Of a DNA stretch of 64,000 bases, positions 1,984-10,264 are shown piece after piece (position 1 is the first letter of the stretch; the number at the start of each line of letters is the position of its first letter). The notes beneath the pieces are model-generated. The model worked only from the letters and a program-made list of their open reading frames with translations. It had not been told where the DNA came from and did not search any database. This DNA is from Scyliorhinus canicula (Eukaryota): positions 11,698,185 to 11,762,184 of the forward strand of contig NC_052172.1 in NCBI RefSeq assembly GCF_902713615.1. The letters are read 5' to 3'. Both the position numbers and the translations under genes were made by a program.

Positions 1984-9380
<7,397 letters not shown>

Positions 9381-9740
9381 GGGGGTCGGGACGATCGAAC
9401 TGGTTAACTCAGGCTTTGTTTTCAGAAGCTGTTGTGTGTTTTTTTAAGTTGTGTGGTAACTAGTCTGTATTTAAGTTCTGATGCTTCAGGTAAGTGTTGA
9501 GTGAGGAGACTCCTTGGCTTTGCCCTGCCCATCGGATCACACCCGGGGAAGCCCGTCACAGGAGCTGCAGCATCATGCTGGCCAGGCCAGCCTCCTGCAG
9601 TCCCAGGACTGTTCACATTGTGCTGTGGGTGTTGTACCAACCCCTTGCACTATTCCACCCTGGGTCCGTCAAATTAACTAATTCACACGTCCTTTGCAAT
9701 TATGTCCAGGAGCAGATTATGGCCATATCCTGACTGAAGA

Positions 9741-9750
9741 AATAAATAAA
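9741..9750 (+). terminator. Candidate proximal poly(A) signal of SNRPA (overlapping AATAAATAAA)
   Basis: Two overlapping AATAAA hexamers followed by U-rich sequence (tattattttgaattt). Confidence 0.45.
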
Positions 9751-9864
9751 TCGCCACTTAGGGTATTATTTTGAATTTGACCGCCCATATTTGGCTATAT
9801 ATATTTTTTGAGTGAGTATCTGACTGGCTACGGCAAGCAAACAGTTTGGCTTAACTGCATGTGA

Positions 9865-9911
9865 GAAAGCTGTTCACCCAGAGTCTCAGTGACATTGCAC
9901 CTGGAGCTTTC
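9865..9911 (+). promoter_or_regulatory. U1A polyadenylation inhibition element (PIE) in the SNRPA 3'UTR
   Basis: GAAAGC-UGUUCAC-CCAG-A-GUC-UCAGU-GAC-AUUGCAC-CUGG-A-GCUUUC: three stems and two 7x1 asymmetric loops, ending 22 nt before AATAAA. Same architecture as the human PIE. Confidence 0.88.
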
Positions 9912-9933
9912 AAGCTTATTGAACTAACAGATG

Positions 9934-9939
9934 AATAAA
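9934..9939 (+). terminator. Distal poly(A) signal of SNRPA
   Basis: AATAAA just after the PIE, with a GU-rich downstream element ttgttgaatgtgttt at ~9959-9973. Confidence 0.8.
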
Positions 9940-10264
9940 GACTTTTTTTATAACCACCTTGTTGAATGTGTTTATTTACCACTCAGCTCTCTTGCTTTAC
10001 AGGCTGAAGGTGCTTGGCCATCGCAACACAGGATATGTGAGCGAGATACATAGAAACAGGCCATGCAAGCCCAACTGGTCAATGCTAGCGTTTATGCTGC
10101 CGACCAGCCTCCTGATCTATCCCTGTTATTTGTCCCCGCTCCCCTCTCTAGAGTTCCACATTCTAACTGCTCTCCTCGGAAAAGATTCTCCTAAATTCCC
10201 TATTTGGTTTATTGCTGACTGATTTCCCAGAAGTGGAAACCTTTCCTGTCTACCCTTTCTGTTT

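Follow-up and report, generated by a model that had tools for sequence, protein, structure and literature searches.

The SNRPA locus and its transcript

The window analysed, a stretch of shark DNA of 64,000 nucleotides, contains the SNRPA gene, whose product is the U1A protein and whose 3' UTR carries a U1A PIE with one altered box. The features of the locus are collected in Table 1. The shark U1A protein is 93.9% identical to that of Pristiophorus japonicus (Japanese sawshark, P0209) and about 85% identical to catarrhine U1A. Its RRM1 differs from the human one only at residues 2 and 5 and by S48N, which is the single substitution in RNA-binding loop 3. An asparagine at position 48 is also present in frog U1A proteins, and the frog that was checked in this respect (L129) has canonical PIE boxes. 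The basic segment involved in dimerisation and poly(A) polymerase inhibition, which the initial annotation had described as kept, is indeed present in the translated shark protein. Repeated peptide units in the open reading frames point to GC-rich tandem repeats at about 200-1400, upstream of the first coding exon, and to a second tandem array at about 7600-8400, in the intron that precedes exon 8426-8514.

Short RNA contigs stop at positions 9953 and 9956 and then continue as A-runs. The position of the poly(A) signal in the other species corresponds in the shark to 9918-9923, which reads AUUGAA. Further upstream, AAUAAAUAAA is found at 9741-9750, on the 5' side of the PIE, and is followed by a U/GU-rich stretch. 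The 19 raw reads from oligo-dT material that could be placed reach a depth of about 5-9 at 9605-9772 and of about 1 over the PIE, and none of the 19 is A-tailed at 9741-9750; a short 3' UTR isoform skipping the PIE by way of 9741-9750 is possible. A one-T insertion polymorphism was also observed after position 9438; one RNA contig shows it at a depth of 917 of 2063, and a low-depth DNA contig from another sample shows it as well.

Table 1. Features of the SNRPA locus, in positions of the window
Feature	Position	Strand	Basis or remark
SNRPA (U1A) coding region	1999..9380	+	Exons assembled with AG/GT boundaries and translated; product of 278 aa
SNRPA coding exons (n=6)	1999-2071, 3040-3212, 6427-6594, 7082-7255, 8426-8514, 9221-9380	+	
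SNRPA stop codon	9378-9380	+	
SNRPA mRNA 3' UTR	9381..9956	+	Ends at poly(A) addition sites 9953 and 9956 in RNA contigs
Candidate U1 snRNP site CAGGUAAGUGU, 5' splice-site-like	9487..9497	+	CAGGUAAGU type also in alligator and salamander 3' UTRs
Candidate U1 snRNP site UGAGUGAGUAUC (core GAGUGAGUAU, 9810-9819)	9809..9820	+	GUGAGU at 9812, 59 nt upstream of box 1
PIE outer stem, 5' strand GAAAGC	9865..9870	+	Pairs with 9906-9911; sequence and Rfam alignment
Box 1 loop UGUUCAC, opposite single A9905	9871..9877	+	AUUGYAC in other species; same in independent RNA contig
Middle stem, 5' strand CCAG	9878-9881	+	Pairs with CUGG 9901-9904
Unpaired A	9882	+	Sequence
Apical hairpin GUC-UCAGU-GAC	9883-9893	+	GUC 9883-9885 pairs with GAC 9891-9893; loop UCAGU
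Box 2 loop AUUGCAC, canonical	9894..9900	+	Sole exact AUUGYAC within the 3' UTR
Middle stem, 3' strand CUGG	9901-9904	+	Sequence
Unpaired A, opposite box 1	9905	+	Sequence
Outer stem, 3' strand GCUUUC	9906-9911	+	Sequence
Poly(A) signal AAUAAA, signal in use	9934-9939	+	Poly(A) tails start 14-17 nt downstream, at 9953/9956

Identification of the element as a U1A PIE

The initial annotation had placed at this locus a PIE whose box 2 is canonical and whose box 1 is not, a proposal borne out by the Rfam match and by the position of the element in the SNRPA 3' UTR. The PIE occupies 9865-9911, 485 nt 3' of the SNRPA stop codon, and is separated from the AAUAAA signal by 22 nt (9912-9933). As had been suggested, the Rfam covariance model RF00460 (U1A_PIE) was applied, and was found to align over its full length to 9862-9930 with a score of 38.6 bits and an E-value of 4.1e-7 in a 351-nt search. 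Because this score lies under the curated gathering score of 50 bits, routine Rfam annotation misses the shark PIE; a scan of the window at the RF00460 gathering threshold gave no match. In other vertebrates, complete elements score between 57 and 75 bits. Lower values were obtained for a frog contig ending inside the element (49.3 bits) and for the crane, where the match is local and without the outer stem (38.7 bits).

No block of the shark 3' UTR other than the PIE can be aligned with the UTRs of alligator, of Xenopus and of two teleosts, which identifies the shark element as an orthologue. A core alignment of eight species shows no variation in stem 2 (CCAG/CUGG), in the first three apical pairs, in either unpaired A or in the AGC of the outer stem. 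At core positions the shark follows the majority consensus throughout, apart from the apical hairpin and three positions within box 1. The shark element is an orthologue of the U1A PIE and is present in the mature mRNA; it is a known element in a new sequence state, that of a PIE with one box altered.

The three stems, the two 7x1 loops, both box sequences and the 22 nt to AATAAA given by the initial annotation were confirmed in every detail by direct reading. The outer stem, the 4-bp stem, the apical hairpin and one unpaired A per box are all present in the shark, and the register of the stems is well defined, 88% of the alignment cells being paired versus 43% or less when the register is slid. 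The apical stem has 3 bp in the shark, versus 5 bp in six of the seven other aligned species and 4 bp in the crane, and the apical hairpin is 5 nt shorter than in the other species of the core alignment. The energy of the canonical fold is -9.1 kcal/mol, equal to the teleost value, and we count the fold as intact on this ground, with the caveat that U9871 can pair with A9905 in the minimum-energy fold, a pairing by which the 7x1 loop would become a 6-nt bulge. The minimum-energy fold of the element is not distinctive (z -0.91). As unconstrained folds depart from the canonical fold in every species compared, minimum free energy is a poor criterion for a PIE.

It had also been proposed that compensatory changes in the outer stem reveal selection on the structure. 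The change itself is found: AAAGC/GCUUU in the shark corresponds to acAGC/GCUgu in Rfam and amounts to a C-G to A-U double change. Its reading as a sign of selection in the shark is only partly supported, since the eight-species alignment yields no covariation signal beyond shuffles and AAAGC/GCUUU also occurs in Channa. The absence of covariation signal is explained by stems that are nearly invariant across the eight species. In alligator the 5' strand likewise reads AAAGC, with GCUUC opposite; this form of the outer stem is thus not specific to the shark.

Presence of the box 1 variant in mature mRNA

Among four runs examined in detail, X8, which belongs to an independent study, yielded an RNA contig assembled at high depth that spans 9412-9948 without any base difference from the genome, its sole deviation being the one-T insertion after 9438. 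The region 9381-10100 is represented in 20 runs from 9 studies, all of one organism. In the 13 RNA-like runs, which come from several studies, 0.75-0.79 of the sampled words of this region were recovered, a share that fits transcripts ending near 9955; almost every word as far as the poly(A) site is contained in these runs. The X8 contig and the poly(A) ends together establish that the box 1 variant is real and belongs to the mature mRNA, and that AAUAAA at 9934 is the signal used. In the single DNA run examined (X10), no contig covers 9682-9913, so that this run adds nothing on box 1. Searches of sequencing runs returned only the shark's own species and one run of a second organism (X42), in which nothing matched the stretch at 80% likeness.

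We note that the 8-mer CUGUUCAC (9870-9877), which covers the odd box 1, recurs at 9609-9616, 261 nt upstream. The chance that a given 8-mer recurs in the UTR is about 1%. The repeat could be a coincidence, or it could have served as template for a multi-base replacement of box 1.

Predicted effect of the box 1 changes on U1A binding

Compared with AUUGCAC, box 1 of the shark has U in place of A1, G in place of U2 and U in place of G4. According to Benitex and Baranger (PMC2203988), U1A binding is weakened by about 5 kcal/mol when A1 is replaced by G or C, by 6.4 kcal/mol (a 50,000-100,000-fold change in KD) when G4 is replaced by A and by 1.6-4 kcal/mol upon pyrimidine substitution, these energies having been obtained for the U1 hairpin rather than the PIE internal loop and for other substitutions than those of the shark, to which we transfer them by assuming additivity. 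Given the high cost of changes at A1 and G4 and an RRM1 that is essentially unchanged, specific binding of U1A to the box 1 loop is improbable. Some occupancy of the second site could be restored by cooperative contacts between the proteins.

According to reviews, poly(A) polymerase is inhibited only when two U1A molecules are cooperatively bound (PMC2874999; PMC6884704), and in another study expression went up, not down, when one U1A hairpin was inserted into a heterologous 3' UTR (PMC9136276). On both grounds, an element with one site is unlikely to act in the same way as the human PIE. A published study of U1A/U2B'' evolution mentions neither the PIE nor sharks.

PIE sequences in other vertebrates

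The U1A loci of other vertebrates were reached through protein databases and scanned with RF00460. In the set of UTRs compared, the shark is the sole cartilaginous fish: the protein searches, using a frog protein (P0002) and the sawshark protein (P0209) as queries, identified one chondrichthyan U1A, that of Pristiophorus (P0209). A shark-like, mis-spliced U1A product (P0010) was also present among the protein matches. No relatives sharing the intron were found by searching with the last-exon open reading frame. A metagenome scan with a pattern agnostic to box 1 gave 120 loci, none of which has the box-2 half, and all 120 are on this account considered as chance matches.

In Channa, Carassius, a further fish (L130), Xenopus laevis and the frog L129, box 1 reads AUUGCAC and box 2 AUUGUAC. 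The order is reversed in alligator and crane, with AUUGUAC in box 1 and AUUGCAC in box 2. The shark, with UGUUCAC in box 1 and AUUGCAC in box 2 (9865-9911), is the only one of these eight species whose box 1 departs from AUUGYAC. The initial annotation had considered that the variant might turn out to be standard in fish; all three ray-finned fishes, like the two frogs, the alligator and the crane, have AUUGYAC in both boxes.

Departures of other kinds were found beside that of the shark. A U1A mRNA contig that we attribute to a salamander (L133, a single assembled transcript whose species is deduced only from 96% protein identity to Pleurodeles U1A) contains at 1625-1696 a PIE with intact stems, a canonical box 1 (AUUGCAC) and an altered box 2 (ACUACAC). 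It scores 57.1 bits with RF00460, above threshold. AAAUAAA and a poly(A) tail are found on its 3' side, and 263 nt upstream there is CAGGUAAGU. In the crane SNRPA gene (L132, 3590-3700), both canonical boxes are present without a complementary outer stem, and AAUAAA is preceded by a spacer of about 55 nt, C-rich and then A-rich. The halosaur Aldrovandia affinis has a U1A copy (L007, 8796-11295) with no PIE and no AUUGYAC within 2.5 kb past the stop codon, and could represent a teleost paralogue from which the PIE was lost. Finally, a U1A transcript (L006) encoding a protein about 80% identical to those of both sharks and tetrapods shows no PIE in its 363 nt of UTR (920-1282). Two GGUAAGU sites occur in this UTR, together with a single AUUGUAC flanked by GUUGUC...GACAAC, and these flanks could present the heptamer in a hairpin loop. 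The salamander, crane, Aldrovandia and L006 cases indicate that the PIE is less uniform than the mammal-centred picture of it. One-box states of the PIE appear to have arisen at least twice, in the shark and in the salamander, with one species in each case.

Sites upstream of the PIE

The GU(A/G)AGU motif is found upstream of box 1 in all nine PIE-bearing UTRs, with 12 sites in 2640 nt versus about 1.3 expected. In five of the nine species, including the shark, one such site lies 42-66 nt upstream of box 1. The two shark sites complementary to the 5' end of U1 snRNA, CAGGUAAGUGU and GAGUGAGUAU, are both located upstream of the poly(A) signal. In human, the PIE and a 5' splice-site-like U1 site act together, as stated in a passage of PMC3157836 that cites Guan 2007. 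The U1-70K protein has a polymerase-inhibitory motif like that of U1A (PMC2874999).

A second group of sequences was noticed at 9617-9658, where four heptamers with one mismatch to the U1A consensus (AUUGUGC, GUUGUAC, CUUGCAC and AUUCCAC) are gathered within 42 nt. Clusters of four or more occur in 0.05% of dinucleotide shuffles of the UTR, this being a post-hoc test. The cluster falls inside roughly 190 nt that have no counterpart in the UTRs of other vertebrates. A second PIE at 9617-9658 was considered and rejected: the region gives no U1A_PIE signal even at an E-value of 10, and its fold is not unusual (z -1.15).

Interpretation of the altered PIE

The reading that we favour, with moderate confidence, is that of a working but altered PIE with a single U1A site. 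In the stoichiometry and mechanism that we infer, box 2 would hold one U1A molecule with high affinity, and the clamp of two U1A molecules on poly(A) polymerase would be weakened or absent. The repression remaining at the poly(A) site would then be exerted by the U1A bound to box 2 together with U1 snRNP, which the presence of the motif would place on the 5' splice-site-like sequence located 59 nt upstream of box 1, and whose U1-70K subunit would contribute a polymerase-inhibiting motif of the same kind. We prefer this combination of one U1A with U1 snRNP on account of the conserved upstream site, of the cooperation between the U1 site and the PIE in human and of the inhibitory motif of U1-70K.

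An odd box 1 might instead be due to faulty assembly, or be an allele private to the animal sequenced. The gap of X10 over 9682-9913 leaves the variant without confirmation from a second DNA sample, but the RNA contig comes from a different study and a different sample and is identical over 9412-9948, almost every word as far as the poly(A) site is carried by the 13 RNA-like runs from several studies, and three base changes are not explicable as a single miscall; we regard an artefact as very improbable. Just as improbable is a changed specificity, which the initial annotation had offered as an alternative and by which shark U1A would have co-evolved to recognise UGUUCAC as well as AUUGCAC. 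S48N does lie in the loop that contacts RNA. Nevertheless every other RRM1 residue from position 6 on is identical to human, N48 coexists with canonical boxes in the frog L129, and box 2 of the shark remains AUUGCAC, three observations that together speak against the proposal. The initial annotation had also proposed a switch, whose second site is filled only at high U1A levels by cooperativity. In such a switch box 2 would be filled first and the degenerate loop afterwards, and the set point would be raised. The shark box retains the geometry of a 7x1 loop, its closing C-G pairs and, in its 3' half, the CAC, shark U1A has the dimerisation and polymerase-inhibitory segment, and cooperative binding belongs to the known mechanism (PMC2874999). 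However, single substitutions at A1 or G4 already cost 5-6.4 kcal/mol each (PMC2203988), and three changes would be expected to bring binding near non-specific affinity, beyond what cooperativity is likely to recover; moreover, the pairing of U9871 with A9905 can close the loop. We consider such a switch as unlikely.

A decaying relic, that is a PIE whose autoregulatory role was relaxed or lost in the lineage and which drifts in a genome evolving too slowly for the remaining core to have changed yet, is in our view rather unlikely, but deserves more weight than artefact, changed specificity or the switch. Three separate derived changes can be counted in the shark: box 1, the apical hairpin shortened by 5 nt, and AUUGAA in place of a poly(A) signal with a new AAUAAA 14 nt further on. 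The short apical stem and the relocated signal could reflect a general relaxation of constraint. Damage is also tolerated elsewhere, as in the salamander contig with its ACUACAC box 2, in the crane, which lacks the outer stem and has its poly(A) signal about 55 nt away, and in Aldrovandia, with no PIE in 2.5 kb. Drift does not easily account for the state of the rest of the element, in which the bony-vertebrate consensus is matched exactly by stem 2, by the five inner pairs of the outer stem and the first three of the apical stem, by each unpaired A and by box 2, in contrast to the flanking UTR, which is unalignable. The three base changes of the core all fall within the 7-nt box, which random drift is unlikely to produce (roughly 35/9880 when simply counted over some 40 core positions). 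The canonical fold is energetically undiminished and the U1 site is retained at a conserved distance. If the change of box 1 is recent, conservation elsewhere in the element says nothing on its present function.

Comparison with known systems

The PIE is a textbook case of autoregulation by an RNA-binding protein, in which U1A blocks poly(A) polymerase on its own mRNA according to a two-U1A model. The shark provides a natural and expressed element in which one box is altered at the energetically most important bases and the remaining core is kept. Together, the shark and the salamander are natural mutants in which the need for two sites can be tested, and they bear in the same way on whether the conserved upstream U1 site can replace one box. 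As a tentative and rather improbable generalisation, one-box PIEs might represent a recurrent working state with feedback through one U1A site and U1 snRNP (by U1-70K); if this were true, the need for two U1A molecules, as established in human, would not hold universally.

The closest known system is the vertebrate PIE described by RF00460, which is associated with the work of Boelens in 1993, of Gunderson in 1994 and 1997 and of Varani in 2000. The shark element resembles it by its location in the SNRPA 3' UTR shortly upstream of the poly(A) signal, by its outer stem, 4-bp CCAG/CUGG stem, unpaired A's and canonical box 2, and by a protein with conserved RRM1 and basic inhibitory segment. It differs by a box 1 that reads UGUUCAC instead of AUUGYAC, with 3 of 7 positions changed, by an apical stem of 3 bp rather than 5 bp, by a stem-to-signal distance of 22 nt where most sampled species have 5-15 nt, and by its score of 38.6 bits for a threshold of 50. 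The salamander PIE shares with that of the shark the intact stems, the single canonical box and a 5' splice-site-like site upstream. The damaged box is box 2 in the salamander and box 1 in the shark, and the salamander element scores above the Rfam threshold.

In the late 3' UTR of bovine papillomavirus, U1 snRNP represses a poly(A) site through U1-70K from an upstream 5' splice-site-like sequence. The shark UTR is similar to this system and to that of human U1A in that, within a single UTR, GU(A/G)AGU lies upstream of the poly(A) signal; one of the shark sites is moreover at a conserved distance from the PIE. In human, however, the bipartite U1 site adds to a two-box PIE and does not substitute for a box, and the shark sites are candidates recognised by their motif. 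A last comparison is with IgM's secretory poly(A) site, where U1A acts on a number of AUGC motifs that depart from the consensus. It offers an earlier example of an action of U1A through weaker sites, to which the cluster at 9617-9658 of the shark UTR may be compared; the cluster differs in lying about 250 nt from the PIE, within a lineage-specific insertion, and in being composed of candidate sites defined by sequence.
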